Shown here: in pieces, positions 1 through 64,000 of the stretch | Numbering within the stretch: the first letter of the stretch is position 1 | How the letters are laid out: each line of letters begins with the position of its first letter | Assembly (NCBI GenBank): GCA_004431415.1 | Contig: QPMI01000093.1 | Location: forward strand, 62,001-126,000 | Origin: Cyanophora paradoxa CCMP329 | Lineage: Eukaryota; Plantae; Glaucophyta | Direction: 5' to 3' | Length of the DNA: 64,000 bases | The notes under the pieces: generated by a model | Database searches by the model: none | What the model was told of the DNA's origin: nothing | The model's input: only the letters and a program-made list of their open reading frames with translations | Translations under genes and position numbers: made by a program

Positions 1-48
1 GTCATACTTTACTGACTGGGTCCGTCTTTTGTATTCTGATCTGTCGGG

Positions 49-2901: not shown

Positions 2902-3083
2902 TCCTTCTCTGATACCTTCCGTTTCACGAATCCGCCGCCCCCGGTCTCCGTCGAATTCAACCTTGCCTCCGATGCCGATCCGTCCCCTGTCCATGTGTCT
3001 CGGCGCCTGCGGCTTTCCTCTCCTGTACCTTCGGCTTCCCCTCTGGCTGTCCCGCCAGATCCACCTCGCCCGCCGGTTCCTGC

Positions 3084-3956
3084 ATGGCCCCTTTGATTCA
3101 TGATAGTCTTGTATCAATCTTCGCTTCACCTCAACTTAGTTTACCCTCAGTTGTTTTGCCGTCACCTCCATCAGATGCTTCATCGATGTTAGTTAGGAGC
3201 ACTGGCCCCCTCCACCTTCCAGTTCCTCGTGTATTCCATGCCTTCCCTGTACCTTTGATTCCGTTCCCTTTGTCGTTAGCTCTGCCTCTTCCTCCTCCAT
3301 CTCTCACTGTTAGCCCTCAGGCAGTTCCGCCTCTTTATCTTCAGCGACCGTCAGACCGTATAGTTTTTGGCAGCGAGTATTTTGTGTATGGTGACGTTCC
3401 TCGTGTGTACCCTTCTCTCTCTTCTACTTCGCTATATTTGCCTCTCCCGCCTGGTTCAGCCCCATCGTCTGCCTTCCCTGTCACTACTGGCTTGCGTTTC
3501 GCCCCTCCTCTTATACTGCCGATTCCGAGTCTGCACCCGAGCTCTGCCCCTTTCCTCGTGTCGTCCCCAGTTCCTCAGATTAGTCTTCAGCCGTCCATTG
3601 TTTTACCAACTCTACAATCTCGATTCCGTTTAGACACTCCGCCAGCTTCGACTTTCCCCTCTAGTGGTGTCCTACGTTTCGCCTCTCCTACTGTTCTACC
3701 GCCTTTGCCTCCTGCGACTACGTCTTCTAGTTCTGCTGTTAGCTCTGTCTTGTCGTCTTCGTCTAGATCTTCGTCTTCGACTGTAGTTCCTCGTGCTCGT
3801 TCTCCTTATTTGCTGCGTCCCCGTGCTCCTCGTCGTTCTAGTGTGACTAGTACTTCTGCATCGACGCCCTTGAGCTCTTCTACTCCTTCTCCTCGTGCTC
3901 GTTCTCCTTATCTTTTGCGTTCTTCTGATCGTGTCCCTTCTCGTGATCCCTCTTGA
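3084..3956 (+). CDS. Pro/Ser-rich downstream ORF in the LINE 3' region, with a duplicated PRARSPYLLR motif
   Basis: 290-aa ORF between the ORF2 stop and the poly(A). The two motif copies use different synonymous codons. Confidence 0.45.
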   Translation: MAPLIHDSLVSIFASPQLSLPSVVLPSPPSDASSMLVRSTGPLHLPVPRVFHAFPVPLIPFPLSLALPLPPPSLTVSPQAVPPLYLQRPSDRIVFGSEYFVYGDVPRVYPSLSSTSLYLPLPPGSAPSSAFPVTTGLRFAPPLILPIPSLHPSSAPFLVSSPVPQISLQPSIVLPTLQSRFRLDTPPASTFPSSGVLRFASPTVLPPLPPATTSSSSAVSSVLSSSSRSSSSTVVPRARSPYLLRPRAPRRSSVTSTSASTPLSSSTPSPRARSPYLLRSSDRVPSRDPS

Positions 3957-4028
3957 TTCTGTATATATTTTGTGCTAGTTTACTGTATCTTTGATTTGTG
4001 ATTGCTTTGTTGTCTTTAATATCACTAC

Positions 4029-4053
4029 CTACGGGGGGTTCGCCCCACCGTAG
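4029..4053 (+). other. LINE 3'-terminal stem-loop with TTCG (UUCG) tetraloop
   Basis: ctacgg-gggg-ttcg-cccc-a-ccgtag lies 6 nt before the poly(A). Its mirror copy is at ~4141-4165. Confidence 0.75.
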
Positions 4054-4122
4054 TCTCTCAAAAAAAAAATCTTTTAAATTTATAATTAGATCTTTATAAA
4101 AAATTAAGATCATTTTTTAAGC

Positions 4123-43540: not shown

Positions 43541-43989
43541 GAGTTCCCTTATCGACGTCGCCCTCCCCCCCCCCTTACCCTTGGACCCCCTCTAAACTCA
43601 TGAGGGGTACAGGTTCAGTCGCCTCCGAGGAGCGGGAGTTCAGGGGTTCGGCCCTCGTGCGTCGACGTCCCTCCGACTAAGCCCGCTCAACCCGGGCCCA
43701 GGTACCCCTCCCGACCGTCCCCCCCCCCCTCCCCCCCCAGGCCGTGCCGAAGTAGGCGGGGAGCGAGCTTCCGTGCAGCGACGACCCTAACCCCCTTAGA
43801 AGGCGCATGCAGTCGTACGTACCCCGGTCCTTCCCCCCCCCCCCCCAGGGACCCGCTCACCCCGAGCCTCAGGTGAAGCGCCCACTCGCTTCAGGTGAGA
43901 TGCTACGGCCCTCCGGCGAGCTGCTTCAGCCTCCAGCCAGGCAGCCCCCCGCCCGCCCCGGCGAGCTGCCGACGCCCGCACCCCCGCAG

Positions 43990-45235
43990 ACGCCGGACTC
44001 GAGCTCGAGTGCCGCGTGCGTGTACACGCAGCGCGCTCGGGCGTGCCAGCGGGTCCAGGGTCGGCCCCCTGCTTCAGGACGGGCCCTCGGCGGATCCAAG
44101 GTTCTGGCTGGGCCCGCGACGCCTTCCGCCGGCGGGCCCGCCGCCACCTTCCAGCCTCGGCGCGGTGCGCTCCCGGGCCCGCCACGCCTTCCGCCGGCGG
44201 CGCTGCTGCCGCCGCCGCCGCCCCCGCACGCCGCTCATGCTCAGCGCAGCGCTGGCAGGGCTCCGCACCGGTCGCCGCGCCTCTCCCGAACTCTGGAGGA
44301 GGTGCGCCTGCGGGCCCACGCCAAGCCGCGCCAAGCGCCGGCGGGGCGCTCCTCCGTCGGCCCGCCAGCCTCGGCCTCGGCCAGGATGCGCGCGCGGCCC
44401 CGGGCCCCCCGGCGCGGTCGCCGAGAGGGGCGCAGGCGGCCGCCGGGATCGAGCCGCGCCGGCCCCTCGTCGCAATCGCAGCCCTCGCCCCGCCCGCCCC
44501 GTGGCCGGGCCGCCGCCGCGCTGACGCCGCGCCGACGGCGGCGCCAGCCAGCCGCGTCGCCCCGCACCGCCCCTGCGCGGGCCCCGCGGGCCCGAGGTCG
44601 AGCTGCCCGTGCCCCGCCCTCGCGATCGACCCCTCCGCTGCGCCCGCCCTCCCCGCCCGCCGGCCCACCGCCGCGCCGCCGCCGTGCCGCCGCCGAGCTG
44701 ACCGCGTCACAGAGGAGCGGGTGGAGGACGCGCGTCCCGCCCCGCCCGCCCCGGCCCGCCCCAGCCCGGCCCGCTGCCCCATCGTCGCCATCGCAGCCGT
44801 TCCCGTGCGCCCGCCCCGCCCGCCGACCCGCCCACGAGCCGCCGCTGTGTCGACGGCGGGGCAGGAGGTCGAGCGGGCGGCGATCACAGCGGCATGCTTC
44901 TGCCCCCGACGCACCCGACGGCGCCCGCTTCGCCCCGCTCCGCCCCGTCCGCGCCATCGCCCGCCGGCCCCCGGCCCTGCCGGCCCTCCTCGCCGCCGCC
45001 CCTCCCTGCCCCGCCCTCTTAGACCCCGCGGGCGGGGCCAGCTCGCGCGGCCTGCGGAACGCTCGTCGCTCGTCGTCGGCGGGGCGTATACGGCGGTGCG
45101 GACGTACCCCCCCCTCCCCCCCCCTGCTCCGCCCGCTCCCCGGCCGGCGCTTCCGCAGGGGCGGCCTTCTTCGGGCCGGCGGCGGGCGGACCCGGCGGGA
45201 GGCCCGCAGGCCTCGCAAGCCGGGGTACAGGGGTT
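43990..45235. repeat. GC-rich diverged direct repeat, copy 2
   Basis: See copy 1. Confidence 0.85.
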
Positions 45236-45987
45236 CTTTTTCATGCCCCGGACCCTCCTCTCCGTCGGCAACCTTCACGAGGTGCACGCCCGCCCCCTCC
45301 CCCGCGCCACCCCCCCCCACCCCCCCCCCCCCCCCCCCCCCACCCCCCGCCCCCCGTTGGGGCCCCGCGCTCCGCCGCCCCTGCGCGCAGTGGCGGGCAC
45401 TGGCCAGAGGAAGCCGCCCGCATCGAGCACTGGCCTGGAGGGGTGCGGTCCCGCCCTCCCCGGTCGAGCCGCTGGCGCCCCCCTCGCCAACCTCAAGCTC
45501 CCCGCGCCGCTGCCGCGCCGCTGACGGTCGTGTATCAGGCTGATGCGTGGCCCGGTCGCCAACTGGGGCGGCAGCACGCGAACTCTGCCGCCGGTTCGCC
45601 CGAGCCGTCCCGCCCCGACCGCCCGCATCCGACGGCCGCGGCGCAGATTGCCGGCGGACCCAGGAGGACGCTGTTGCCCAGTAGTGGCCCAGTGGGGCCG
45701 CACTCTCGAGGCAGTAATCCACTTCAGGACTCCAATCTTTCCAGCTCTCCGTTTCGAATTCTTTCGCAGTGGGTGCCTATTCGCCCTTGCAGCTTGGATA
45801 TTCGATGGTAGATGGAACTCCCGCTTCCTGCCTGCTGGGCGCCAAGGTAGCGGGCTCCTGCCCGCTGGGCGCCTCTCCGGCTGCCGCGAATCACCTTGGC
45901 GGTGCCTCCACCCCTCCTCTAGCCGGTTAGCCGCGCGTCCGTTAGGAATCCGCTCAGCTGTACGCGTGGTCCAAGTTCCGCGCCCTG

Positions 45988-46476
45988 GTGATGGGACGGG
46001 ATCGGCAGCGGCCGGCTGCGGTTATCAAGGTCAAGGCGCACAGCGACGAGGATATGCACGAGCTAAACGACGCCGCCGACAGAGCGGCCGATCAAGGCGC
46101 GCACCTGGAACAGGAGGAACTGGACGAGAACATCTTCCTGCCGCCCGAGTTCAGCATGCCGGCAGTGCTGACGATCGAGGGACCGACCGGGATAGTCAGG
46201 CGAGTCGAAGGCGACCCTCGGCGGCACGCCGCTGTGCTTCACGCGCACCACACGCACTTCGCGTGGGCGAACCAGCTCAATGCCGGGGAGTGGCTACGGC
46301 TGCCAGTGGATCACGGCGCAGTATACGATCAGATGGCTATGGGGCCCCGCCGAGTCGGCGTGAGCCGAGAGAGCAACTGCTTCCGGGGTACGCACATCGG
46401 TCCTCTCTGTAGGCACCCTTGTCCTGAGGGGGGTTATAGTAGCTCAGCTCTGCTTCGGCTCTCTAGGCAGGTGTAG
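45988..46476 (+). pseudogene. Retroelement relic: C-terminal half of an RNase H domain
   Basis: Intron-less ORF with VIKVKAHS-x6-NDAADRAA (RNase HI motif W/KVKAH..GNExADxLA). No upstream RT is visible. Confidence 0.7.
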
Positions 46477-46833
46477 GCAGCGTTTCTAGGCAGGTATAGG
46501 CTCTTTCTCCAGTATAATAGCTCCACCCGGTCCGATGTCTGAAAGGCTTAGTCCCGTAGCCTAGTAGGTTCATCTCTCGACTTGACACAGATGGACACAT
46601 CAGTTTTATCCTTAGCCATTTGTCTCGGTGTGTGCGAATTCAGACGTATATGTCCCTCCACGAAGGCATTTCTCCGTCTTCAAACTCTTAAGAGTCAAGA
46701 TGATTCCCGCCCCCTCTCCCCCCCCTCCCCCCCCTCCTCCCCCCCCCCCCCACACTCGCGGCCGACCCATCCGAACCCCGAATAACGATGCTCTCAAATT
46801 TCGAAACAGCGCATGCATTGCTTGCACTTACAG

Positions 46834-49800
46834 CTATTTTTTACGGTAATAACCGCTGTTGTAAGGGTCATAGGGGTCGGAGGAGCTGCCAGAATTGGAG
46901 CTTCCACTGCTTGTGCTTTCCGAATTGTAACTGTCTGAGTAAGGGTCATTTGAGCCGCCGTTGTAAGGGTCATAGGGGTTGTAGGAGCTGCCAGAATCGG
47001 AGCTTCCATCGCTCGTGCTTCCAGAACTGGAACTGTCAGAGTAAGGGTTATCTGAGCTGGAGCTGCCGGAGCTCGAGCTCGAGCTCGAGCTGCCGGAGCT
47101 CGAGCTCGAGCTGCTGGAGCTTGAGCTGGAGCTGCCGGAGCTTGGTCTATAGCTTCCAATGATAGAATTTGCTAAGCCAGAGCTTGCGCTTGAACGGAAG
47201 TTCTTCCAGTAGTTCGGGTCCATTTGCTGCAAGTAAGTCTGAAGGTCCTGATCGGTTTTGGGTTGAGCGACTTTGAGTAAGGATCTCTGTGCGCACAAGA
47301 TGCATGTGTAAGCTAACAATTGCTTAACTATAAGCAGATTAGATGGAGATCGCACTGGGGTACATGTGAATTCGCACTTCCTGCAGGTTGTTATACCATC
47401 TTTTAACTTATTCGCAATAGTATTCCTCAGAGTCTGAGCTGCTTCCGTTTCAGCCTGGCAAGTCTGCGGCAGAGCAGGCGATCGCGATCGATATCAGTAG
47501 CGAGCTGAAGCAAGTTACAGATTGAAGAACACGCCATCACACCTTGTATGCTGGAAGGAGCAAGAAACGGATATACTCTTTGTAAATTTCGAGATCAACT
47601 TGTCTTTGCCGGACAAACGCGCTCAGCGTGTTTCGATCATTTGCCAATCGGAGCGTCGAGTTGTGCACGGATTTGATTGTATCTTCCGCAACCTTAACGA
47701 CCTTGTCGGCCCACCGTTTCTCGGCTTCTGCTTGCCGGGAAAAAACGGCAGCAATGGCCGCCATCGCAATCATAACTGCACATGTATTCGAGGGTTATCA
47801 TTATGACCCTGCTGCTTTGTTTTATATTTTCGAATATTTGCGCACCTGCTGCGATCAGGATGTAGATAATCGCCCGCTTTCGCTTCTTGTAAACATCATG
47901 TCGGGTGCTCTCCCGTACAAGAACCTAAATTCGGCAATCAGCGATGCAAGCTGAGCCCGAAACTGAGGTCTACTCACGACATGCTCTGGTGTGGGCTTCA
48001 AAAACACCGATTCGTCGAATTTCTTCTTCCCCTTATCCTCGCCATCCTAGCCGCACGCACTCAGATCAACACGGAACACAAATGCCTCCGCCGTAAAATT
48101 ATAACATAATGGTTGCACCTTAAAAAGCTTAGGCTTGGACCTCTTGAAACGATCCCAGGCCTGGTTGCAGCGAGTCCGCAGCGCCTCCGGAACAAGTCCG
48201 TACATCGCCCCCGATGGTTCTCCCATTCCGTACCGCTGAAGCCACTGCCCAAGTTTAAACGAATTCTGAAGTCAGTAGCATGAAGATACGGTACAAATGC
48301 GAGAACGAACCTCGTTGGCCTCCGTCAATGCAAAGCCACCGAGAAGGAAGGCCTCGGCTTTGGTGCGCAAAGTTTTCTTGATCTTTGATATGTGGACGCT
48401 GTCAGGGTCGGTCCAGCGGTCCGACGGAGGGATACCCAGGGCTGACGACGACGAGGAGCACATCATAAACAAATGCAGTCAAATGCTATAGCTAATGCTT
48501 GCGTTCACGCACCAAGTTTGTACTTGTCCGCCCGAAGAGACAGCTGAGCGTGCAGTCTGCAAGTACAGTCTGCTCTCTTCGTGCTCTCTAGGACCAACTA
48601 AAACGATAGCTCACCGTGAGATATCTGCATCGAACTGCATGCAGGTGCACGTGCATTAGACTTGATCTTGAATGATGACGCAGCTAATTCAAACGCAGGC
48701 ATACCCTGATGGCCTCCTCCATCTCTTTCACAGACTCGCAGAACGCCGGATCATCAGCAAGCACCGCAAGGTCGGCCGGCGTCTTGCCGAGGAGCGCAGT
48801 GAATTGCACTTTCTGCCTTCAGGCACGATTTAGAGGTTGCGGTGCAAAACTCGACCGGGGGCTCGACCTACCACGTGTTCACCGCCTGCCAGACGTCGAT
48901 ACGTTATAATTAGAGCGGTTCGGCGCAGAAATTACTATGCTACGTATAGACGTGAAATTAGGCAAACGCAGACTCACATCGATGCACAGCTGCTGCCGGC
49001 TGTACATTTACGGTTTCAAAGTAACGGCGAGTAAGCGGCAGCGTAAACGTGAGAAACACAAGATACAGCAACCAAAAAGAGCATGCACACCGGAGGAAGC
49101 TCCGCTCAGATTCGGATGCATTCGGACCAAGCGTCTCCGGCAGCGGAGAGATTGCTTCCATCTCAACCACGCTGATGCGCATTCGAGTTTGTGAGCAAGG
49201 AATGACTTCGCGCAAGTACACTTGATATACTAATTCTGGAAACTTATTCTGAATTTGAGGAAAAGAAAATTCTGAAGGACGGACACAACACGCTTGCTCT
49301 TTGCCTGGGCGTATTCGAATTCTGCAGAGAAGGGCAAAGTAAGATCGGGCGCGGGTTGGCGTCTGTGTATATAGGCTAGGTGCTCACCGTCAATGCTGCA
49401 CACGGTCAGAAAACAAATGCAAGTCAATTCGCGCGGACGGACATAAAATCAGCAACTCTGAGAAAATGACACACACCAATGCTGGGATTGCAGCCAATCG
49501 TTGGTGAGGAGGACGAGGACAACCGAGGATCCTTGGATGGCGATTGCTCTTGCTTGGCTCCTGTGCAATCGCAAGTTCGATTTCAAGAAGAGCCGAAAGA
49601 CGTGCGCGACAAGATATATAAAGGGCGCCATATGCATAATATATATGTGTACGAACCACTGCAATCCCTTCAGAATTCCTTTTGATTGGAAGTCCCAGGA
49701 TTGCGAAAAATTAGAAGCAATTCGGCTTCACACAAAAAAGCATGGCACACCGCTATCAGCGTTTGAGTCGAACCAGTGCGATATAGCTCGATCCTTCAAT

Positions 49801-51638
49801 AACTCGCAGATGATCTGCCGTGCGCATTTATTGGTCAAGCCGCGATTAATCATAATATTCGAATCTGGAAATAAGAAGTTGCTTCAATTCGTGCACACCT
49901 GCATTTCTGCTGTCTGCTTTCGGCGATACCTGTATATCGCAGAGGAGCGGTATTGATATTAGACTTGCGATAAGCTGGCGCTCATGTGCAGGCTTAAGGA
50001 TGCTCACGAGACCATGACGTCGTACGGCTTGATCGGGACGTTTGCATCTGCGAAGCAGGTTCGTTTAGCGACAATATATATATCGCCTCTGAAGATATCG
50101 ATCGCAATATCAATGCTGATCATGATGCTGAAATTCAAAGCGCGCAACCCGCGCTGTAATAAGTGTACATTGCAATCACCTGGCTCAACCACTGACGCTC
50201 CCTGGGGCTGCGGTTGAAATCAGCATCAGATCCGTCGTGATGTCCGCTGTATATAATATATATATTGAGTGCAAGTAGAGCATTGAAGGCTGACCCGAAT
50301 CCCAGAGACGAGGCGATCCCAAACTTCGAGGTTGCTTGAGTTGTCTACTCGTTTCCTACATGACCACCATGCTGATTTTTCCGTGAAGGTTGGTTTCTGC
50401 AACTCCTTCACGTTGATCTCCACGTGCTTCGATAGAATGGTAGCAGCAGCCATTGCCTCAACCGTCCCAGCGGCTTTTGCTGCCTTGCTAACACTCGTCC
50501 CGATTGAAAGAGCGACGATCTTGCGCCCGAGCCAGACGGCGTGGTCAAGCTCAACGAGGCAAGCGCTGTTTCCGCCTGTAATCAGCCAGGTGGAATTTAG
50601 AATGCGAGGCGCGAGCGACACGCACGGAGAACGGAACCATCCTTTTTGAGACGGAGGTCAATTTCGTTCAAATCACGTGCACTGGTCAGTACAGGCAGGC
50701 AGGAGGCGCGGCCGGCTATTCGGGTGCAAACCTTTCGTGGCGATAACGACGAAACTTTCACAGCTTTCTATTGCAGCCGAGATCCGCTTCTGGTGTTGCA
50801 AATTCTCGATAACTCCTTTGTGCTCAGCCTTGTCTTCGTCATACCAAACCTAAAACTCGCATTATCAATTTGGCAATGTAAACGCTATATTAAAGCGCAC
50901 TTTAAGGCCGAAACGTTGGAGGCCTTGAGCGAGGGTCGCGGCGGATGGCGCGTCGGTGTAGCGGTAACGTCGGCCGAAACAACCGAAGTGCCCACTAGTA
51001 GAGGCTCGGGCGTAGCTGATAGCACTGCCAGCCAAAAGAAGGATCAAATGGCGTCCAGGAATTCGAAGGATGCAAGAGGAATCAAAACAAAAAAAAGCGC
51101 GCAAGCTGAAAGATGCAAGCTTTAGAGATTAAGAGAAGCATGCGGGACGCACGCGTCATAGAATAGAATCTGTTCTTCGGGGCGCGGATCGGGAAGCGGG
51201 GCAGAGCTGTAATCCCGTCCTTTTGGAGCTGCCGTCGATATGAGCCCCGGCCTCGGGTGGCTAGACAGCGCCTTCCCGTCCGCTGAAGCGGATTGATCGT
51301 TGATCGTCATGACAACGATGCCACTATCCCCGACCACTGCCTGCGGTTCGCCAGCCTCTGGATCTTGGTAATCCTGTGCGCGCGAATACTTCATGATCAG
51401 TGAGCGTAGGATCGCCACTGGAAAAACCGACATAGCGATATCGAGAGCAACTTTATCGAATCATTTGAATGCCCACGAAATGCGCCCGCGAGCGCACTGG
51501 CAGCTGGCCATCGATGTCGCCGCTGGTGCCATCACCCGCCGTCGGCTGCGCAGAGTGCTTCGTCGAGCGGAGCCAGCTAGGCAATGTAGGCACGCGCAGG
51601 CTGGGCAATGTAGGCAATGTAGGCTTGAACTTCTTCAT
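46834..51638 (-). CDS. Tandem TIR-TIR domain, single-pass transmembrane protein (TIR-A), ~898 aa, 27 exons
   Basis: In-frame GT-AG exons: 51638-51498, 51373-51153, 51024-50901, 50849-50732, 50641-50626, 50565-50295, 50207-50180, 50047-50008, 49929-49899, 49814-49751, 49678-49657, 49560-49477, 49395-49388, 49321-49285, 49171-49091, 48999-48978, 48885-48872, 48816-48705, 48634-48615, 48556-48513, 48441-48311, 48244-48119, 48046-47978, 47924-47846, 47775-47543, 47463-47356, 47286-46834. TIR1 is FYDAAISYAR..LAQGLQRFGLKVWYD..ISAAIESCESFVVIATKGWFRSPACLVELDHAVWLGRKIV. TIR2 is YDVMVSYRR..LLKDRAISHWFD..ILKGLQWSQARAIAIQGSSVVLVLLTNDWLQSQHCIDEFEYAQAKSKRVVVV. The TM helix is AIIYILIAAVMIAMAAIAAVF. Confidence 0.88.
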
Positions 51639-52639
51639 AGCTATAGCCGGTTGCAATCGCAGCGAACTTCGCGCCCCCGCGCGAAAGTGCCGACTGTCGC
51701 GTCTACCGGGCAATGCCTCAAGGCGACGTCCGACGTCCAACTCGAGCTCGGCGATGTGCGCACTAAGTATCCGTATACTTAATTATGCGTACGCATATGC
51801 ATACGCCTTGCTATAGCCGCGGCCGCTGTCTCGGCGCTGAGCAGTCTCGACGAGCTCGAGTCGAGTGGACCTGCCACTGGGCTGCCAGTCGACCGGGTCC
51901 GGGACGGGTCCTACCGAGTAGTACCGACTCTACTACCGAGTCCTACGGGCTCCTACCGACTCCTACCGAGTCCTACGGGCCCTAGTACCGTAGTACGGGG
52001 TAGTACGGGCCCGGGGATCCCGGAGTCCCGGACTCGGGACCGGGGACTCGGCGGGCCCGGGGGAGTCCCGGAGTCCGGGGAGTTCAGGTTTCAACGGTCA
52101 CCGGATTTGCTCGACTTCGCTGGCAGTGACTGACACTGACTCATCAGTGAGTACTACCGGTAGGCTGTAGCACCGTGGCACCGTGGCGGCTAGCCGCCTG
52201 GCGCCGACTAGCCTACGGTACCGGGTCACCGGCCGCGGGTAGGCCTGCGGAGGGTGCGGCTTGCCGTCAAGCTTAACTTAGTAAGCCGGGCTGGGGCCGC
52301 AACGACTCGCAACTTGAGTCGCAAGTCAGTGATCAGGGCCTGCAGGGCCAGTGCAGGCCCCAGGCCCAGGCCCCAGTGGCCTCAGGCCTCGCCGAGTCGG
52401 TCCGGCCGCTGCGCATGCAGCCAATGCCAGCCATTCAATAATTGCGCCGCGCATGCACTGCGGCAGTCCGGCGCGCCATATCATAGTACTACTATACTAT
52501 GATAGTACCGGAATAGACTCGTAAAAAAAGGAACGTCGTAAAAAGTTGGCGAATCAGCAGCTAATTTTTTGGTACTACGGTACCGCACCCGCGGCCGGCC
52601 CGGCAGTGGGCCGGCACAGGCGCCGTACGGCGTACGCAT

Positions 52640-53100
52640 ATATGCGCAGTGCAGGACACTGCAGTCTGCAGACTGCAGGCTGCATCTTCAGACTGCAGGC
52701 TGGAGCCTGCAGGCTGCAGCCTGGCGCTGCGGCAGCCTGCAGGCTGCAGCTGCAGCCTGCAGACTGCAGGTGCATATGAGACGAAGCGTTTTGATAACAA
52801 CGCCTTTCATCTCGCAAGCTTAAGCTTGCGAAGCTTGCAAGCATTTTCAACAAATTCGTAACGCCTTTTATCTTGCAAGCTTGCGATTCGTTGCGAACAA
52901 CAACAACTCGGTAAGTAAAGCCCGGTGGCCTTTCAAGCTTTAAGTTTCATCTTGAAAGCTTCCGAGTTCGAATTCCGACTCGGCGAGACAAAAGCAAGCG
53001 AATCATTTTCCAAGCCTACACATCTCCTTTGGGGCCTTCAGCTTTCATCATGCAAGCTTCCGAGTTCAAGATTGGCAATTGCATTGAAATTCGATTTTGA
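52640..53100 (+). repeat. Dispersed repeat, inverted partner of 60540-60880
   Basis: Shares ctgcaggtgcatatgagacgaagcgttt.gataa, aacaacaact.ggt and aatcat.ttccaag..tacacat..c...tggggcctt with the reverse complement of 60540-60880. Confidence 0.8.
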
Positions 53101-53174
53101 GGTCTCGTATGCGAACACAGGACAATTACGGACAATTTTGGGGGGTAGATAGTATGAGACGACTGAGAGCAGTG

Positions 53175-53251
53175 AATTAGCAGAGTCCCAAATTAACAGA
53201 CCGTCGGACTATGTCAACATTTCAGTCTGTTAATTTGGGACTCTGTTAATT
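53175..53251. repeat. Inverted repeat, 27-bp arms (1 mismatch), 23-nt loop
   Basis: aattagcagagtcccaaattaacagac ... gtctgttaatttgggactctgttaatt. Confidence 0.85.
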
Positions 53252-54146
53252 AAGTGGGTCCAGTATTTTTGTGTGTTACACGGTACGGTCACCGGGTACC
53301 GGACCACTACCGGTACCGAGCTGCCGGAGCCTGCCGCCGCACTGCCGCAGTGCGGCAGCGCCGGCAGTCACTGAGTCACTGAGTGCCAGCTGCACTGTCC
53401 GATCTGCATGCGCACAGCCTGCCAGTGCACTAGTACTGCGCCGCGGCGGCAGGCTGAGCCAGACTAACCGTAAGGTCCGTAACTACCGTAATTATGCGGG
53501 AATTTATGCCAGTAGTATGGTCCGTATACTACTAGCCTAGTAGGTCTAGTATATCGCGTAGTCACTGAGTCACTGTGAGTACGTACTACGTATACGTTTC
53601 TAGCTACCGTAGTACCGGAGCCTACCGCCTCATGATCAGGGCCTACCGCCGGCTACCGGCCGCGGTACTACCGTAGTACGGTACTACCGTAGTAGTACGG
53701 TAGACTCCGGTAGTACTTCTAGCAAGTTCTAGACTACGGTAGTAAGCGCTCTGCGGCACTACGGACTCTACTAGGCTACTAGGCTAGTGCTACGGTACGG
53801 AGTCTACCCGACTCCCCGGGTTCACTGCAGCTCTTCAGCTCCACTAGTACTGCGCAGTAATTTATAAGCCAGAAAGGCGTTGCCGCGGTGCGCGAGCCTC
53901 GGAGGTCGGCCGCATCGAAATCCGCCGGCGTCGACGTCGACGCCGCGCCGCTAGCGCTTCCGACGCCTGGGCCCGGGGGCGCCCGGCGTCCCGCGCGAGA
54001 TCAGACCTTGGAGGCTAGCTATATATTGCACAGTACCGTCAGATCAGGTCGAGACACATATCCGATTGATATCGCCTTGCCACGCGCGGCCGCTGCGGTT
54101 TCAACCGGATCGGCTTCGAATTCGTCACCCTCCAGCACCGTCGACC

Positions 54147-55082
54147 ATGGCTCGCCTCGCACTCGCCGCCGTCGTTGTCTTCGCCGCCGTGCTGATGGCG
54201 TCCGCCTTCAGGGCCACGGTCCGCCTGCCGCGCCCTTAAAATTAAGCTTCCAACTGCAACAGCCGCTCTAGATCGATATATCTAGATCAGCCGCTCAACC
54301 GCTTATGATCATTATATGTGTGTGTGTATATTTCTAGTACTAACTGCACATACGTATGTACTACGGTACGCCCACACACACACACACACACGAAGGTCTC
54401 GGGTCCCTGGTGCGCATCGATATCGATACATATGCATGTATATATATACACACCAATGCGAGTGCGAGGTCGAAGCCGCCTAACCCTGCGCCAGGAGAGA
54501 TGATCGGTGCACTTACAAGGATGATGGCTGGAAAGAGAGCTCTGCAGACGTTCCGGAGACCTGCACGGCCATCAGCTCAGATAATTTTGGTGCATGCTTG
54601 GCTGGCTAGACATGATCAGGACTATCGCTGGCCGCCTGCAGCTGATATCGATGGTGCTTTTCAGGTTCCGAGAAGACCATCTGCAGCGGCGGCAGGGTCA
54701 CTGTCACCACCTACAGGTGCTGACTCTAGATCTACTATGTACATGGTTGCCTTTGGATATGAGTTTTAAATTGCGCCGCTGCGACCACCAATCGCGACCT
54801 CAGCTCCGGGGACTGCTCCGGGGAACCGTTGACCTCGTCCGCCTCGAAAAACAACGGCTGCATTGGCTCCGGCGTCAGTACCTACTCGGCCTACACCAAG
54901 GTTTGCCCGCCCGTCGACGTCCGCCGGCGCGCCGACCATACAAACTATCTATGCGCTGACCGTGACGCGCGATCGCAACGTAGACGAGCTGCTCGACCTC
55001 GGCCGGCTTTGCCATAGCCCCCTCGATCTTCGGCCTCCTTCTCGCCGTCGCGGCCGCCGCTGTGCTGAGCGGCTGCAGCTGA
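54147..55082 (+). CDS. Small secreted cysteine-rich surface protein with C-terminal hydrophobic (GPI-signal/TM) tail
   Basis: Signal peptide MARLALAAVVVFAAVLMASAFRA. Exons 54495-54589, 54665-54716, 54804-54900 and 54984-55082 join in frame (..GSEKTICSGGRVTVTTYSSGDCSGEP..GCIG..TSCSTSAGFAIAPSIFGLLLAVAAAAVLSGCS*). The second exon (possibly 54396-54409) is uncertain. Confidence 0.72.
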
Positions 55083-58000
55083 GCTTAGCTATAGTTGTAA
55101 GTCTAGATCTAAATAGGGTAGTACTATGTCTCCTTCCGAAGTTCTGATTATTGAACTGCGAAATTCAAATTAAGCTGCCATGGTTAACTTCGAATTCGGA
55201 TTACGTATACATAACACCTGCCTGTACTCGGGGGCGGTGTGCCTGGCTTAGTGCCCGGGGCAGAGTGCTTGGGGTGCAGATACTAGTGGCCCGGCCGCGA
55301 TTCTCGCGCCGGGGGTGCAAGGGGGGAACCGGGATCTAATGAAAGAGTCGTAGTGGCACGCACATGCACGGGGCAGATCTAGATCGACCCCGGCCCAGCG
55401 CGCGCGGCAGGTTGAAGTGTAAAGATAGACACAGAGTATATATGATTGAAAAAAATAGAAAAGGCCCGGGCCCATTAAGCAGACGCTGCGATCAAACCGA
55501 ATAGAGAAAAGCCTCAATGAAAGGCCAGATTCAGCGCACTGTATATGAAAGATCGTTCTGGAGCGAAAAAACGCTGCGCATCAACTGTTCGCACGGCCTA
55601 CCGCTAACCCTGAACAGCTGGCTAAAAGATGATGGTGCTGTCTGCAGAGGGCTCGCCGTAAACATAGGCGATCCAGGCCTTCTGGAGGGGGTCGGGGCGG
55701 AAGTCGACCATGGGGGTGAGCGGCAGCCAGCGGCGCCGGTCCTGAAGAGAGCCGTCCTGCGAGAGCATGGTGAGGCGGCCCGCCGCCTCGAGCGCCCGCA
55801 GAGCCACGCGGCTGGCGCGCTGCTCTGCACGAACAGCCCCGACAGACAGCATGCGACGGCTGTCTACTCACCACCCTTCGGTGCATGCGCAGGGGCGGGC
55901 AGAGCCGCAGCCACCGGCACAGCTAGGAAGCGGCGCAAGCGGATTTGCGGTGCAAGCTCAAGCACGAGTGCCGGGCAGCGTGCTCGACTACGGGCAGCGG
56001 CGCGTGCTCGGTACGCAGTGCTGCGGTGCAAGCTTGATGCAGTGAAAAGTAGTCCAGGCGGCACGGGTACCGGGCGGCGTACGCGGCGCACTGCAGCTGC
56101 GAGGAAGCGGAAATCTATAGGAGACAGGTAGAGAGAAGTGGTTCCATGGCCATGCAGAACCGCGCAACGAAGAGCAAGGCGTACGCGACGCACTGCGAGG
56201 AAGCCGAAATCTACAGGAGACAGCTAGGGAGAACTGGTTCCATGCAGAACCACGCAAGGAATTCGAAGACCGGAATGAGAGAGAAGTTGGTTTCCAGGCG
56301 TCAAGGCGAGGAAAGCTGGTCTTCGCTCTCGAAAACCGCTTTTTGCATGGACGGCCGCAGCGACAAACACGTGGCGCAACCCAATTTCGACCCATTTTTT
56401 TCCCGCGTTGCAAACTGGACCTCGAAAACGGCCTCGTAGAAAAATTTTGGCTGAAGCGAGGGAACGGGAAGCAAGGGGGGAAGACCTTCGGTCTTCTTTC
56501 CCCCCTTGCAATATATATGTCCTCAAGCTCCTCCTCGTCGGCCGCGGGCCGACGCCGACATCGTCGTGGGCTATATTCTAGTGAATTAAGTACAAGACTT
56601 CGAGGTGCATGTGCACGTGGGGACCGGATCCGGACGGGAGGCCCGCGCGCCAGGGCCGCCGAGGTCCGGGATCCGGAGAAGGTAGGTAGCTATAGGGTAG
56701 GAAGAATTCGAACAGGAGCCAGATCCGGAGGCGCACCCTAGGCCTGCTGCTGGTTGAGCTTCTCGAGGAGCTCCTTCTCACGGTGCAGCTGCAGCTGAGT
56801 TTGATGTCAAGGGGCAGATCTAGATCTAGTGGAAGACGCCCCGCGGCCCCATGGCCAACTTTCACACACGACTCAACCCCAGGGCTGGCTGGTGGCCGTC
56901 ATGGCATGGTGGCCATGGGCCGGCGCCAGATGATCGACGCCAACGGGGGGTAAAGGGGGAAGGGGGTGGGGCGTGTGGGGGGGGGGGGGGAGGGGAGGGG
57001 GGAAGGGGATGGGCCCGGGGGCCGGGGGTCGTGGGCGTGGGCGAGGGAGGGGCGGGAGAAAGGGAGGGAAGGGGGGGGGGGGGGGGGGGGGGGGGCAGCG
57101 GAAGAAGGGCTAACTGACTAGCGCTAGCACTCGAGCTCCCTAGCTATAGCTATATAGCTATAGATGTAGGCCTGGGCCGCCAGGCTTTATAAAATTAATA
57201 GATCTCATATAGGCTAGGGCTGGGCCGCCAGATTTCGAAATCGAAATCTGCCCCGCCGGCCACGTCACTGTCCGGTCCGCTACGGGGCCGGGCGCCCGGC
57301 GAGCCACGCCACTGTCCGGTCCGCTACGCATTTGCCCCACCATGGCACCCGGAGAGCCGCGCCACTGCCCTCCGTGCCTCCGCTATCTATAGGGGCCGCC
57401 CGGCCGCCCCGTCCTGCGAGTCGGGCTAACATCTGCTGCAACTCCAATTTTTGCAACCTGCCTGGCGATCGCGAGCCGCACCGCCGCCCCCCGCGCCTCC
57501 ACGTGCACCCCGCCCGGTGATCATGATATCGATCCGTGCCACGGTGCGCCTCCACATGTACACCGCCACTGTGTCTCCACCCCATTTTGTTTTTCGCAAA
57601 AGTGGACGTCGCATTGATACACCACGGCACATGTATCAATGTTCTACGTGACGTGCCCTTCCGACCGGTCATCTATCTGTGTCTCCAGCCCACTGTGCCC
57701 CCCGTCACGGCGTTGTGCCTCCACCCCTTAATAATAGTTTGTGATCATGATCATGCATTTGAGGACTCTATAACAAAGCTTGAAGCTTGCAATTGAAGCC
57801 TCTCTCCCCCGCCCCGAGAGGCGGCTGATCTCTCTAGGCTAATGGCGGTAACCGGCCATATGCATCGAAAATAAAAGCGGCGTAATGAGAGAAAACCCCC
57901 CCCCCCCCCCCCCCCCCCCACCCCCCGCGCTCGTGTGTATCGCGCTCGCACTCAATTAGCAGATGTCATGTCTGTAGCTAGCTAATGATAAATCTGATAA

Positions 58001-58095
58001 TCCGGGACGAGGGAGCAGGCTCGCCATCGATATATATACATATATATCGCATCTAGAACTACACCTCAAGCTCAAGCTCGAGCTCAAGTCGTTGA

Positions 58096-59511
58096 TCAGA
58101 AGCGAGAGACTGTCGGCTCGATGGTGGCGGGTGGCGGCGGCTGCATTTGCATCTGGCTGGAGGTGGCCGGGGCCAACGGCGTGGCCGACTCAGGCGCGAG
58201 GGGCCCACGCTTTTTCACCTCCCGCGCGTCCTGGGCAAGCCTGCAAGTCACAGAGAAATGAGCAATGCGAGACTGGGATTATTCGCAGAAACGTCAGTTC
58301 TAACGGGACGCACGAGCAACAAGGACATATGCAGAACTTGATGGAGTCACAAAAGCAGGAGCAGATGCCAGCCTGCAGGGGGGTAAAAGTTCATGTCAAT
58401 TGTAATCAACTTCGGTCAAAAGGATATATAACAATAAAGGGTTGCCAGACCTCGAAACCATAGCCTTTGCGGATCCTCCTCCTCCAGCGGTTGCTATGCG
58501 CATTTCGTCGAGTCGGCATCAATCAAAATTTTGCAAACGTCCTGGAGGGGCCGGGTCGCCACTAGTACTCACCCACAGATCTGCGAGAGCGGGGCCGGCG
58601 CCCGGCAGCCGACTGTAAGACACGGCCTCGCGCGCCGGCGCCCTGAGCCTGGCCAGGCCTACTATGATAGGGCGCGACACGCACGATGCAGCCGCCGAGG
58701 ACGCAGCAGGGAGGGCAGAAGCAGAACAACGCCTTGCATCTGTGCAGGCAATATTGAACCGAATAGCCTAGTGCACGTTGCAGATGTGGCGTGTTTATGT
58801 CGAGGGCCGGATCGTTTTTACCCCTCTTTTGTGCAGTCGGAGCCATCGAGAGCCTCAGCTGTTATAAAGTATAATTATGAACAGGGGCAGCGCATGGGTG
58901 CAAATCGGCACAGGGGCAGCGCGTGGCCCAGTGGCAATCGGCGGGGGGATGATGTATATACGAGATATATGTACCTGTCCATCCAACCTGCACATGGCGC
59001 AAGCTAAATAGGTGAACTCAGAATCAAATGAAATAAGCAAACGGTATCGCGCTACTAGGCTACAGTAGTACGCGTGCTAAGAATGTATACGTAAAAGTTC
59101 AGTGATTTCTCCCAGATCTGGGGAGCTTATAATTACCTGGACACAAGGTATGCAGAACGAAGCGAGGCCTGCGCATGCGCAACGGACGGACTGGCATGTC
59201 AGAATTCAGTACCGCAGTGCCACGGCGATCGACTGCGCATGCAATATAACTGTGCACGGCTCGAGCTCTAGATCTCACGCCAGGATCGGATGCGAGCCCA
59301 CTAGTATACTATGATAGCATATATGCACGCCGCAACGCCGCGCCGGATATGGCGTTAGGTATTCGGCGCGGCCTGACGGCGCTTGACGACAGAATATTAA
59401 ACAGGCGCTGCGCGCAGGGACCGCAGGCGCTGCCCGCGCAATTGCTCACGCACAAATCGAGCAGTCTGAGCAGCAGCCACAAAGGCTGTTCGAATAATCT
59501 TCCTTTGGCAT
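58096..59511 (-). CDS. PLAC8-family (cornifelin/PCR/CNR-like) cysteine-rich membrane protein, 9 exons
   Basis: Exons 59511-59454, 59168-59137, 58987-58975, 58858-58822, 58739-58685, 58580-58573, 58493-58451, 58372-58314 and 58240-end give YSNSLCGCCSDCSICLASFCIPCVQVG...RWRRRIRKGYGFE...CDSIKFCICPCCSLAQDAREVKKR, the PLAC8 signature. A probable 1-bp deletion near 58200 shifts the tail (stop at 58096 if corrected, 58059 if not). Confidence 0.9.
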
Positions 59512-60539
59512 CCTGCTGCTAATGCGCTGCAGATAATGCTGCTGCTAGCTATGCTGCCTCCAGGCTTCTGTTGTTGCCGCAGTACTAGTGATGCAGTACA
59601 AGCTATACCGGACCTATTACCGTAGTACCGGTACTATGATACGCATTGAGAGCTAGTGCTGAGACTCACTGCTGAGGCGCCAGCCTGCAGCCTCCAGGCT
59701 GCAGCCTGCAGCTGCTGCCAGGCTGGGCCGGGCCGAAAACATTCCGAAGTTCCGACGGTTCAAAAAGCCTTGCAATCGACGTCCGACGGTCCGACGGTCG
59801 GGCTTCACCGAGTCAAAATAGTCACTGTCTAAGTCTGTCTTCGTAAGTGGCACTGTGGCAGTGCTATTATATAATTTTGATATATTCAATGATTTATCAC
59901 GTGCACTGCCACTGGTCCGCCAGTGCCACCAGCCTGCCAAGCTGGCACTGCGCATGCAGCTGCAGCAGGCGTATCTCGCCGTATCATAGTATATATCAAA
60001 TATATCATTTATTAGTTACATCATCATCATGGCATTTTACATGTTACATAGAGCTGCGGCTCAAGCTCGAAGCCCCCGGCTCGAGCCAGGCTCAGCCAGC
60101 TCGCGATCGAGTCGACCCGCCCCAGCCTCGAGCCGTATGGGGAGGGGTACCCCAGCCCCGAGCCGGCGCCGGTGCCTCGATCGCGAGCTCTAGATCGATA
60201 TCGATCACTGAGTCATCGGATATCTCCCGGCCCCCCCGGCCCCCCCGGCCGGGCCCGTGGCCGGCGGGCTCTAGGCCTCGAGCTCCCGGGCCCCCGGCCG
60301 CGGCTCGAGCCCCGACTGGCCCAGTGGCCGCCGACCGGCTCGCCGAGTCGAGCTACAGTAGCCCGACCGGCTCGCCGAGTCGAGCCTCGGAGCCGGAAGA
60401 ACGGCCGGCTCGAGCCGGGCCCGCTCAGCGGCTCGAGCCAGGCCCGCTCGAGCCGAAGATCTACTACTAGGCTAATCTAGTACTTGTACGGTATATATAT
60501 ATATAGCAGTAGTAAAACTTGATTGCAGACCTTCGAATT

Positions 60540-60880
60540 CATGTAGACTCTCTGAGATGAATTTCGGAATTTCGAAACTTTAAATCATGAAAGGCCCCAA
60601 GTGAAATGTGTAAACTTGGAAGATGATTGGACTGTCTCGGAAGCTTGCAAGATGAAAGGCCGCCGGGCGTAACCAAGTTGTTGTTCTTATCGAAACGCTT
60701 CGTCTCATATGCACCTGCAGCCTTCAGGTGCCAGCCTTGCAGCCTAAGTTGCAGGCTGCACACGTGCAGCGCGGCCTGCACCGTAGGCTGCACGCAGCCT
60801 CAGGCTGCAGGCTCAGCGGCTGCCAGGCTGCAGCCTGGCAGCTGCAGCCTGCAGCCTGCACCATGCATATGGCCAGCCAT
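60540..60880 (-). repeat. Dispersed repeat, inverted partner of 52640-53100
   Basis: See partner. Confidence 0.8.
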
Positions 60881-61883
60881 AAATTATAAATCAGTTTGGT
60901 AACTTATAGTAAGTTAGTACCGGCTAAATTCAGGTAAGTTTGACGGTTGATTTCGAATTCAGGCTGCATGCATGCGCAGGCTGCATGCAGAGTCATTGCA
61001 GACTGCAGTCTGCAGCCATATGCCGCAGTGCAATATATATATACTATGATAATATGCATATACTACAGTGTGATATTATCATAGTATATACTATGCTACC
61101 GTAGTACCGTGATACTATGATATTGTTCATTGGTCCGGCGGCCAGCGCCGGCCACTGGCCCGGCGGCCAGTTGCCACTCTCGAAGCATCCGGATCCGATG
61201 AGTCGGCGATGACTCGAGCTCGGCGATGAGTTCATCTCCAAATTACCGGTAGACTCCAATGATGAGTCATTGGTGACCAGCGTAGTGGCCACTCAGTGAC
61301 TGGCCGGCCGCGCATGGTAAAGTGGCAATATGCATGCGCGGCAGTGCATCCGCGCATTGTGATTGGCCAACTCTATTATTATTTGCAAATTCAATGATTA
61401 AGCAAGCTGCAGCGGAGCTGCAGGCTGCAGCCTGCAGCCTGCGGGCCCGGGGCTGCAGCGCCTGCAGCTGCAGCCCCGGGCCCGGCGGCCCCGGCCTGCA
61501 GGCTGCAGCTTGTAAGTTGACGTTGCAAGTTACTTGCAAGTTGCAACTTGCATGCAACTTGCAACTTGGCAAGCCTTGCCAAGTTGAAGTACAACCATTG
61601 AACGGTACACTCGGTACTAGTAATATTGCAGTTTCCGACTCGTTCGAATTCCCGCCAATTTCCCGGGCCGAGTTCCGAAGTTCGTTTCAAATTTGCAATC
61701 AATGTTTTAATATTGCGGCTCGGCTGGAACAGCATGCACATCCGGGCCGTGCGGCTCTTACCGTACTAGGGCCTGCACTGGCAGGCTGCAGCTGGCAGAC
61801 AGTGGCAGTCAGTGACTGCAGCTGCCGCCGGGCACTGGCCCAGTGGGCCAGTAGTACCAGTAGTACTAGTATCCAGTCACTGA

Positions 61884-62204
61884 GGCCGAAAACCGGATAC
61901 CGGCCGATTCGGTGGTTATCCAAGTCTCTTTCCGAACTCGGGACTTGAGTGTTCGGGTCTTTACCGGGTCCTAGCATGGAATGTGGAGACTTGGAATCGA
62001 GCTCGATTCCACGAACAGTCACCAAGGCGATGAGCTCAAAATTTTGACGCGGTTACTATGGCAACCGCGTCAGGGGCCCAACGACCGAAGCGACCAAGTG
62101 CCAAAAAAATGATGTCATGGCCCTTTCGGTCGTTAACAAGTACCAGCTCTTTTGCATTGAGGGACTTGAGAAAGTACCGTCTCTAGCGTATCCGGTTTTC
62201 GGCC
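61884..62204. mobile_element. PIF/Harbinger (Tourist)-like MITE
   Basis: 17-bp perfect terminal inverted repeats ggccgaaaaccggatac / gtatccggttttcggcc, flanked by a 3-bp TGA duplication (61881-61883 and 62205-62207). No ORF. Confidence 0.8.
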
Positions 62205-62589
62205 TGAGTACCCGCTCCGCACTGCGGCAGGCTGCGCATGCAGGCTCACTGAGTCAGGAAGTGGCTGCCAGTGCATGCACATGCGTTGTACTACAGTACC
62301 TAGATCTGCCGCAGACTGGCCGCACGCGGCAGTATCGTAGTACTAGTAGTAGTCTAGTACTATTAGTACTACGTACTACGGTATATTATATAACGTCCTA
62401 CGTATACGCCGTGTGACGGGCGTACGGCAGGCTGCAGCTGCCCAGTGCCCGCGGCCGGTCCCAGAAAGCGCTGCACTACTGTGCTAGCGCTGTCTGCTTG
62501 CCTCGCCTGGGCTCAGCGGTACTAGCTATAGTCTTCTTCGGCGCCGGGGCACGACCCACGGCCCGGCGGTTTAACGTTGCCGGTCAACG

Positions 62590-64000
62590 ATGGTGAAGTT
62601 TAGGTGGCATCGCAGCAAAGAAGAACGCAAGAAGAATGCTTCGCATCCGACCGCGATCGATGAACAGCTATCGGTACCGGTGCGCTCGCGCTCGCGCATT
62701 TTCACGCGCATATGTATGCACGCCGGAGGGCATATTATAGATCTGCCGTAGATCAGGGCACGTCTCGATCGATCTCATGGCCTCTAAAAATGCTCGCTTG
62801 CGCAGGAGTTTCAGCAGCGCCCACGGGATCGGGACGCTGGCGAACCGCAGGCCACGGCCGTGGCTGGGGAGAGCGGCCTCGTTGTGGTGACAATCAACGA
62901 TCCACCCGTACACGCTACACGGGACGAAAAGGCGCTGGACCCCGAAGCCATGCAAATGCCCGTGCAAATGCACACATCTTCGGATATGGTATCAGCTTCA
63001 GCGCTCAGCGAGCTCGAGCCGAAAGCTCGCGGCAAGAGACGGGATTATTCCAGTGCACCGCTTCCCGATCCCCGCCCTGAAAAGCAAATCCAGTTCCACG
63101 ACGCGTGCGTCCACGATTTTCTTTATGTATGGTCGTCTTCGACAACATATATATCACTATATATCTTGACCTTCGGTTGGCCACAGTGCCGTCAGCTACG
63201 CCCGATCCTTCACCAGCGGGAAAGTGGCGACGCCCTCCGTTACAAATGCGCCCTTTGCCGCAACCCTCGCTCAAGGCCTTCAACGCTTCGGGTTGAGAGT
63301 GTGTATAATTTCATTTTATCAACGTCCATGCGCGCACATGGAAACTGAATCGACTTATAGACATGGTACGACAAAAAGAAGAAGGCCGATCATGGAGGAG
63401 GTATTGCGAGTGTGCAGCACCAGAAGCGGATCTCAGCAGCTATTGAGGGATGTGAATGTTTCATCGTTGTCGCGACAAAAGGTGCCCATTACCGTATCTG
63501 CATTTTATGACCTCGAAAGACGCAACATTTCACTGACCTTCGCCTCGAATAGAATGGTTCCGGTCACCGTGCGTTTCGCTTTTATCTCGCATGCTCGACT
63601 ACAACTCCCCCCCTCCCCCCTAACCCCAACTCCAATCCCTTGCTTTGTATGCTGGCCTGATCAGAAGGGGTGTTGACAGGGCTTGCCTCGTCGAGCTCGA
63701 CCACGCGGTTTGGCTCGGGCGCAAGATTGTCGCACTGTCAATTGGAACAAGTGTCCGCACGGCAGCGTCAGCCATTGGCACGGCCGAGGCGCGGGCTGCT
63801 GCTGCTATTCTGTCGAAGCACATGCAGATCAGCGTGAAGGAGTTGAGAGGAGCTGACCTTGCCCGAGTTCTGGATCGCCTAGCAGTGACGATTCGGGTCA
63901 GCCTTCAATGCTCTACTTGCACTCAATATATATATTATATACAGCGGACATCACGACGGATCTGATGCTGATTTCAACCGCAGCCCCAGGGAGCGTCAGT
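62590..64000 (+). CDS. TIR-domain protein paralogue (TIR-B), 5' part; runs off window end
   Basis: Exons 62590-62679, 62806-63104, 63187-63298, 63361-63481, 63553-63568, 63680-63896 and 63984->end have the same intron positions and phases as TIR-A. TIR1 is FHDAAVSYAR..LAQGLQRFGLRTWYD..ISAAIEGCECFIVVATKEWFRSPACLVELDHAVWLGRKIV. Confidence 0.88.

Follow-up and report, generated by a model that had tools for sequence, protein, structure and literature searches.

Two genes transcribed away from each other are present at this locus, gene A on the minus strand and gene B on the plus strand, in the divergent orientation given in the preliminary description of this DNA. The window, i.e. the whole stretch of 64,000 nt that was analysed, contains gene A and only the 5' part of gene B, the remainder of which lies past the window end. 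Gene A was modelled by tblastn of its homologue P0001 on the window, by splice-site reading and with the table of open reading frames; its start and the part below position 48700 are predicted only. The following features were assigned, the exons of each gene being listed in the direction of its transcription:

46837 to 51638, minus strand: gene A, an intron-rich model with the layout TIR1-TIR2-post-TIR region-putative TM-Ser-rich tail
near 51638, minus strand: putative ATG exon of gene A
to 51153, 51024-50901 and 50849-50732, minus strand: gene A exons before the microexon
50641-50626, minus strand: 16-nt microexon of gene A
50565-50295, minus strand: last TIR1 exon of gene A
50343 to 50396, minus strand: in-frame insertion of 54 nt (18 codons) present only in gene A; it lies in the last TIR1 exon, shortly before the switch to identity
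50191 to 50301, minus strand: gene A arm of the identity tract (direct reading, repeat search), composed of 7 nt at the end of the last TIR1 exon (50301-50295), a complete 87-nt intron (50294-50208) and 17 nt at the start of the 28-nt linker exon (50207-50191)
50207-50180, minus strand: 28-nt linker exon of gene A
50047 down to about 49284, minus strand: TIR2 exons of gene A
49179-49090 and 48815-48708, minus strand: post-TIR exons of gene A
47493-46837, minus strand: last long open stretch of gene A
51639 to 62589, no strand: spacer between the gene heads
62590 to 64000, plus strand: gene B, 5' part
near 62590, plus strand: putative ATG exon of gene B
to 63104, 63187-63298 and 63361-63481, plus strand: gene B exons before the microexon
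63553-63568, plus strand: microexon of gene B
63680-63896, plus strand: last TIR1 exon of gene B
63897-63983, plus strand: intron of gene B, followed by the linker exon from 63984
63890 to 64000, plus strand: gene B arm of the identity tract (direct reading, repeat search), cut by the window end; it runs from the last 7 nt of the TIR1 exon through the intron 63897-63983 into the linker exon

The naming of A and B as putative TIR-TIR genes rests on the homologue P0001 (eukprot tig00000523_g1837.t1). It was the sole match, with 47% identity, when an open stretch of 143 aa from the last TIR1 exon was searched exhaustively with HMMER; gene models of A or B were not matched. Word searches gave no match for the same 143-aa stretch, no match besides P0001 itself for P0001, and no match for the first 110 residues of the last open stretch of gene A. 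P0001 could be mapped onto gene A exon by exon (E 3e-41). The full P0001 protein scored 76 bits against the Pfam family TIR_2 (PF13676; cut-off 28), its TIR2 half 58 bits and its truncated TIR1 half 21.5 bits, the last value being below the cut-off. TIR2 also matched solved plant and bacterial TIR chains. Single exons of gene A are too short for such searches: they gave no TIR match in Pfam (TIR_2 PF13676 or TIR PF01582), and exon-by-exon PDB sequence searches gave no match either. A single-sequence AlphaFold model of P0001 reached a mean pLDDT of 53, too poor for a fold comparison.

Upstream of the identity tract the two copies are clearly distinct. The coding sequences are 74% identical over 537 nt (179 aligned codons), in agreement with the exon differences noted previously, and the same codons gave dS 0.83, dN 0.21 and omega 0.25. 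Individual exon-like blocks are 68-89% identical between the copies, the longest exact run is 17 nt, and identity is only 50% over the final 48 nt of the last TIR1 exon, a stretch whose terminal 7 nt belong to the tract. Four upstream introns occupy homologous positions in A and B and have GT..AG ends, and they differ in length (128/51/90/60 nt in A and 82/62/71/111 nt in B). Their similarity between the copies is no better than that of shuffled sequence, so that for these four introns the earlier description as barely alignable is borne out. The duplication that gave rise to A and B is thus old, the heads of the genes having reached synonymous near-saturation under purifying selection.

The divergence gives way abruptly to identity. 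Positions 50191-50301 are the exact reverse complement of 63890-64000 (111/111 nt), as established by direct reading, by the repeat search and by blastn; the inverted match reported in the preliminary description, complete intron included, was therefore reproduced. This intron is identical in A and B at 87 of 87 positions. Its designation as intron 6 holds if the putative ATG exon (51638 in A, 62590 in B) is counted. The length of 111 nt is a lower bound, since the match stops at the last base of the window, 64000, and not at a mismatch; the visible extent of the tract thus comprises 111 nt and a single, proximal boundary. That boundary is sharp. It lies 7 nt ahead of the splice donor, and the 28-nt linker exon precedes TIR2. 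In P0001 the switch point corresponds to residue 120/121 and the Pfam match of TIR2 begins near residue 140, which places the switch at the TIR1/TIR2 boundary as had been claimed. The tract is an ordinary exon-intron-exon stretch and occupies the same exon/intron position in both genes. Two other origins were considered and rejected. A chance identity has a probability of about 4e-15 per position for an exact run of 111 nt at 74% identity. A dispersed repeat or transposon was dismissed as only two copies are present, no third copy being found when the tract was searched against the window.

The arms of the tract, 13,588 nt apart, sit within a larger inverted duplication detected by blastn (about 50191-53064 versus 64000-60591). 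The outer parts of the spacer (up to about 53064 on one side, from about 60591 on the other) can still be recognised as an inverted duplication and consist mainly of palindromic (CTGCAGC)n arrays, and the central part of about 7.5 kb is unique. An Rfam search of 49500-64000 at E <= 1 gave no match in the tract; elsewhere the matches were all below threshold and fell on palindromic microsatellites. A Pfam search of the 20 longest open stretches between 51700 and 62600, which genes with short exons would escape, gave no domain of a recombinase or of any other kind. At the start of the window there is a separate near-perfect palindrome of ~4 kb with a 37-nt centre.

The pattern is best explained by recent non-reciprocal copying between the two genes, through gene conversion or through concerted evolution of their bodies, an explanation to which we assign a probability of about 0.7. 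The segment shared by A and B is far more similar than its flanks (100% over 111 nt versus 74% in the 537 coding nt), and the excess extends to neutral sites, with an identical intron set against upstream introns at the shuffled level and an upstream dS of 0.83. Because selection at the protein level cannot keep a neutral intron identical, the intron in particular argues for copying. The suggestion of recent gene conversion made in the preliminary description fits everything that was tested, namely an old duplication under constraint beside a tract with zero differences and a complete intron.

According to this explanation, an ancient head-to-head (inverted) duplication would have produced two TIR1-TIR2 membrane-protein genes transcribed away from each other, and their promoter-proximal parts and TIR1 exons would then have diverged to synonymous near-saturation with purifying selection retained. 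Much later a non-reciprocal transfer would have overwritten one gene with the sequence of the other, from a point 7 nt ahead of the donor of the last TIR1 exon onwards. This transfer, by ectopic gene conversion or through concerted evolution acting repeatedly on the bodies, would have wiped out exon and intron differences alike. From the pattern in the window we infer the copying mechanism, a direction of transfer and the continuation of the tract past the window end. An inverted orientation of duplicates favours intrachromosomal conversion. The start of a conversion event between sequences that are only ~75% identical is expected to be rare, and a long history in which the bodies were homogenised again and again and TIR1 was spared is therefore just as likely as a single event. 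Partial conversion with a sharp boundary is familiar from the human gamma-globin pair and, from arm to arm, from the Y-chromosome palindromes, where old duplicates are likewise much more alike in one segment, in its introns as well, than elsewhere. The present locus does not differ from these in principle and would add TIR-TIR genes of a glaucophyte-type genome to the known examples.

The geometry of the locus also permits inversion. Recombination between the arms would invert 50302-63889 and exchange the promoter together with TIR1 between the two bodies, and the resulting hybrids would be intact and in frame because the tract occupies the same exon/intron position in both genes. The preliminary description had raised the idea of an invertible N-terminal cassette; its geometry was found as claimed, inverted repeats bounding the putative invertible segment with 13,588 nt between them, but nothing points to an operating switch, as neither a Pfam domain in the 20 longest spacer stretches nor an Rfam match in the tract was detected. 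A simpler variant is an occasional inversion polymorphism, generated by ordinary homologous recombination, in which the 13.6-kb interval is found either way round across cells or strains. It is unlikely, though the best placed of the alternatives, and it would supplement the conversion explanation and not replace it. If true, TIR1-A and TIR1-B, with their promoters, would be re-paired with the two bodies. In its favour are the identical inverted repeats of at least 111 nt that flank the interval and a precedent in Saccharomyces, where a 24-kb flip/flop region of chromosome XIV has been inverted recurrently via two homogenised 4-kb inverted paralogue blocks, the flanking paralogues being YNL018C/YNL034W (Salzberg et al. 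2022, PMC9731477). There, as may be the case here, inverted paralogues are kept identical or nearly so by continual gene conversion and their repeats can invert the interval (PMC9731477). The two cases differ in that the yeast repeats are homogenised over their whole 4 kb and both orientations are documented (PMC9731477), whereas at this locus at least 111 nt and only the assembled orientation are seen, homogenisation covers part of each gene with a base-sharp edge inside the gene, and inversion would create hybrid genes. The same precedent also weighs against the polymorphism, since the orientation in yeast was maintained during about 53,800 mitoses and 950 meioses (PMC9731477); with such stability an inversion polymorphism here, even a real one, would have to be seen as a by-product of evolution and not as a switch.

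A second nuclear system is the mating-type flip-flop of Ogataea (Hansenula) polymorpha (PMC4238957). There an inversion by homologous recombination between inverted repeats alters which gene copy occupies which context. It is regulated and results in silencing versus expression near a centromere, whereas neither regulation nor position-dependent expression is indicated at the present locus. A functional extension of inversion, in which the homogenised tract was kept because a flip re-pairs the TIR1 heads and promoters with two bodies bearing different ectodomains, is very doubtful. If true, it would amount to a shufflon-like diversification of immune-type receptors in a eukaryotic nucleus via general homologous recombination.

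An artefact of assembly or polishing, with the identity arising from mis-joining or from consensus polishing of a long-read assembly, is improbable. The assembly attributed to this genome is of a type that invites the question (PacBio RSII, Canu and Quiver with Illumina correction; PMC6704402), and the ~4-kb palindrome at the window start may be a long-read hairpin, so that artefacts may occur in the assembly. Against this, 13.6 kb of unique sequence lie between the arms, their inner flanks are clearly different paralogous sequences, and polishing is unable to raise an identity of about 50-75% to 100% with a base-sharp edge.

It is very improbable that the tract is a strongly constrained element (for instance one that regulates splicing, or an intronic RNA) whose sequence has not changed since the ancient duplication. 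Just past the boundary the protein shows unusual conservation within the family: over the three exons that follow it, gene A has 32 of 33 residues in common with the distant paralogue P0001, compared with 53% in TIR1. Constraint rarely yields absolute identity, however, and here not a single change is seen over 111 nt, 87 of which are intronic and others synonymous, beside a dS of 0.83 and in a tract that has no Rfam match.

The bacterial systems that the proposed N-terminal cassette resembles in its working principle are the R64 shufflon (Rci) and the phase-variable type I hsdS genes, in which inverted repeats in coding sequence allow inversion to exchange N- or C-terminal modules of paralogues. 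In these systems a dedicated site-specific recombinase, whose gene lies alongside, acts on short specific sites, and to our knowledge mixed orientations are found in every culture. The locus studied here differs in its eukaryotic host, in a repeat that contains an intron and in that no recombinase was found in the 20 longest spacer stretches. A programmed, recombinase-driven cassette of shufflon or hsdS type, with regulated shuffling of TIR1 heads between two receptors, is the least credible alternative: the arrangement alone speaks for it, with inverted identical tracts exactly at a domain boundary of divergent genes, but Pfam gave no match whatever in the 20 longest open stretches within the spacer, and the repeat is an ordinary exon-intron-exon stretch and not a short recombinase site. 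We know of no programmed recombinase-driven cassette of this type in a eukaryotic nucleus.

The locus is thus best explained as another instance of an ordinary process, the partial conversion of genes duplicated in inverted orientation. For annotators and read-mappers it means that short reads cannot tell the two gene bodies apart. The locus also offers a test case for whether converted inverted pairs undergo inversion as well. In the putative TIR-TIR pair a fast-diverging first TIR domain is joined to a homogenised or strongly conserved body, and this combination bears on how the large TIR repertoire of this alga has evolved.

A search for relatives of gene A, the minus-strand member of the pair, was hampered by its single exons being too short for profile searches: nothing relevant was found by Pfam among 20 minus-strand open stretches or by PDB sequence searches with single exons, and the 143-aa open stretch of the last TIR1 exon had no match in a word search. 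An exhaustive HMMER search with the same stretch returned one protein only, P0001, the 304-aa EukProt model tig00000523_g1837.t1. P0001 scored 76 bits against Pfam TIR_2, spread over two stretches: the C-terminal half is clearly a TIR (58 bits) and also matches solved plant and bacterial TIR chains, and a truncated TIR occupies the N-terminal half (21.5 bits, under the cut-off). Its single-sequence AlphaFold model (pLDDT 53) was too poor for a fold search. In tblastn successive minus-strand exons between 50849 and 48708 aligned with P0001 (E 3e-41), as did 63364-63896 on the plus strand. Since the homologue maps in this way onto both strands, gene A and its plus-strand paralogue, gene B, are assigned through P0001 as divergently transcribed TIR1-TIR2 genes, in agreement with the preliminary description.

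Exon-intron model (gene A exons from the splice-site model, gene B exons at the same junctions; every intron listed has GT..AG ends in both copies)
..51153, minus: gene A, first modelled exon
51152-51025, minus: gene A, intron, 128 nt
51024-50901, minus: gene A, exon
50900-50850, minus: gene A, intron, 51 nt
50849-50732, minus: gene A, exon
50731-50642, minus: gene A, intron, 90 nt
50641-50626, minus: gene A, microexon, 16 nt
50625-50566, minus: gene A, intron, 60 nt
50565-50295, minus: gene A, last TIR1 exon
50294-50208, minus: gene A, boundary intron, 87 nt
50207-50180, minus: gene A, linker exon, 28 nt
50179-50048, minus: gene A, intron, 132 nt
50047-50008, minus: gene A, first TIR2 exon
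..63104, plus: gene B, first modelled exon
63105-63186, plus: gene B, intron, 82 nt
63299-63360, plus: gene B, intron, 62 nt
63482-63552, plus: gene B, intron, 71 nt
63569-63679, plus: gene B, intron, 111 nt
63680-63896, plus: gene B, last TIR1 exon
63897-63983, plus: gene B, boundary intron, 87 nt
from 63984, plus: gene B, linker exon

Direct reading of both sites and a repeat finder agreed with the earlier claim that 50191-50301 is the exact reverse complement of 63890-64000; the arms are 13,588 nt apart and no further copy was found across the rest of the window. The length of 111 nt is a minimum, since the match stops at the window's final base and not at a mismatch. This tract spans the boundary intron in full (87 nt), together with 7 nt at the end of the last TIR1 exon and 17 nt at the start of the linker exon, and lies at the position of residue 120/121 in P0001, some 20 residues ahead of the TIR2 start. 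The identity switch had thus been rightly placed at the TIR1/TIR2 boundary, and the enclosed intron is 'intron 6', as reported, if an additional 5' ATG exon is counted, which is likely to lie near 51638 (A) and 62590 (B) in a conserved reading frame. At its outer end the tract closes off a longer inverted duplication (approximately 50191-53064 versus 64000-60591), which in blastn of the two halves consisted of short blocks of 78-87% identity interspersed with unalignable DNA.

Several further features of the locus were recorded. Eleven successive exons of gene A (51024-49284, minus strand) share one genomic reading frame, so ten consecutive intron lengths are divisible by three (51, 90, 60, 87, 132, 78, 84, 72, 96, ...), a run with a chance probability of about 2e-5; gene B does not follow this rule at its homologous 62- and 71-nt introns. 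Introns in the published C. paradoxa assembly average 86 bp, with 9.2 per gene (PMC6704402). In TIR2 of gene A (49467-49322) the exon ending around the WC motif adjoins one starting with the EFEYA stretch, and a correctly phased canonical GT donor that would preserve a P0001-like reading was not found there, so both the splice and the placement of the putative catalytic glutamate are provisional. In the last open stretch of gene A, positions 46853-47057 hold two copies of a 102-nt unit (86% identity) set in a low-complexity tail rich in Ser, and GAGCTC-type microsatellites come next at 47052-47142; the so-called ectodomain of this gene is a short, low-complexity sequence. The TIR island stands out in composition, with 46-60% GC across both genes and the spacer (46000-64000) against 65-84% in the gene-dense 10000-46000 region and a reported genome mean of 67.6% (PMC6704402). 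Palindromic (CTGCAGC)n-type arrays (52659-52774, 59680-59719, 60710-60867, 61413-61509) lie upstream of both genes, partly mirrored between the arms, and gave rise to all sub-threshold miRNA-like Rfam matches. Long poly-C/poly-G tracts occur at 45289-45355, 46706-46751, 56950-57100 and 57896-57926, one of them directly past the gene A 3' end, adjoining an 80% GC block (43800-45700) with long open frames on both strands.

Upstream of the tract, A and B align without gaps over 179 codons at 74% nucleotide identity (dS = 0.83, dN = 0.21, omega = 0.25); they are old duplicates, both retained as coding sequence. Their four upstream introns differ in length, with similarity no higher than in shuffled controls; the boundary intron, by contrast, is identical at 87/87 positions. 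The final 48 nt of the last TIR1 exon, preceded by an in-frame 54-nt insertion present only in A, show 50% identity although 7 of them already belong to the tract, so the change from near-random to perfect identity is base-sharp. An exact run of 111 nt at background identity has a probability of about 4e-15.

Selection on the protein cannot yield a perfectly identical intron, and Rfam found no match inside the tract. Given these results and the age of the duplicates, recent non-reciprocal copying between the inverted copies is the straightforward explanation, and the gene conversion proposed in the preliminary description is supported. The copying could have been a single conversion event or an ongoing homogenisation of the bodies (all that follows promoter and TIR1), which TIR1 would have escaped. 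A similar tendency is seen across the family: identity between gene A and P0001 rises from 53% ahead of the boundary to 69% past it, and the first three post-boundary exons match at 32 of 33 residues, which suggests a variable TIR1 followed by a conserved or homogenised region. Inverted paralogues are well known to undergo partial gene conversion or concerted evolution; partial conversion between duplicates is familiar from the gamma-globin genes and arm-to-arm conversion from Y-chromosome palindromes.

That the identity arose in assembly is improbable. The assembly is not above suspicion, since a near-perfect palindrome at the window start (46-8139; arms of about 4 kb, 46-4078 and 4116-8139, around a 37-nt centre) is either a long-read hairpin artefact at a contig end or a genuine large palindrome; its pieces are 99-100% complementary with small indels only between them, and the AT skew changes sign within it at about 4100. 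The tract arms, however, have 13.6 kb of unique spacer between them and plainly differing paralogous sequence at their inner flanks, and a rise in identity from about 50% to 100% with so sharp an edge is nothing that polishing can produce.

Of the invertible cassette suggested earlier only the geometry was retained: crossing-over between the tracts would invert 50302-63889 and exchange the heads (promoter and TIR1) in frame, so that head B would join body A and head A body B. A programmed exchange of TIR1 heads is nevertheless very unlikely, as the repeat is no recombinase site but ordinary exon-intron-exon sequence, and no Pfam domain was found in the spacer's 20 longest open stretches, a search that short-exon genes would escape. 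Nothing indicates that the inversion operates or is used. Among analogues, the best documented is a 24-kb Saccharomyces flip/flop region, bounded by inverted paralogues that are continually homogenised by the same process; it has inverted repeatedly over evolution, yet its orientation stayed constant through about 53,800 mitoses and 950 meioses (PMC9731477). By this analogy, at most an occasional and unregulated inversion of the A/B interval would be expected, and the resulting head swap would matter only if the A and B bodies differ farther downstream.
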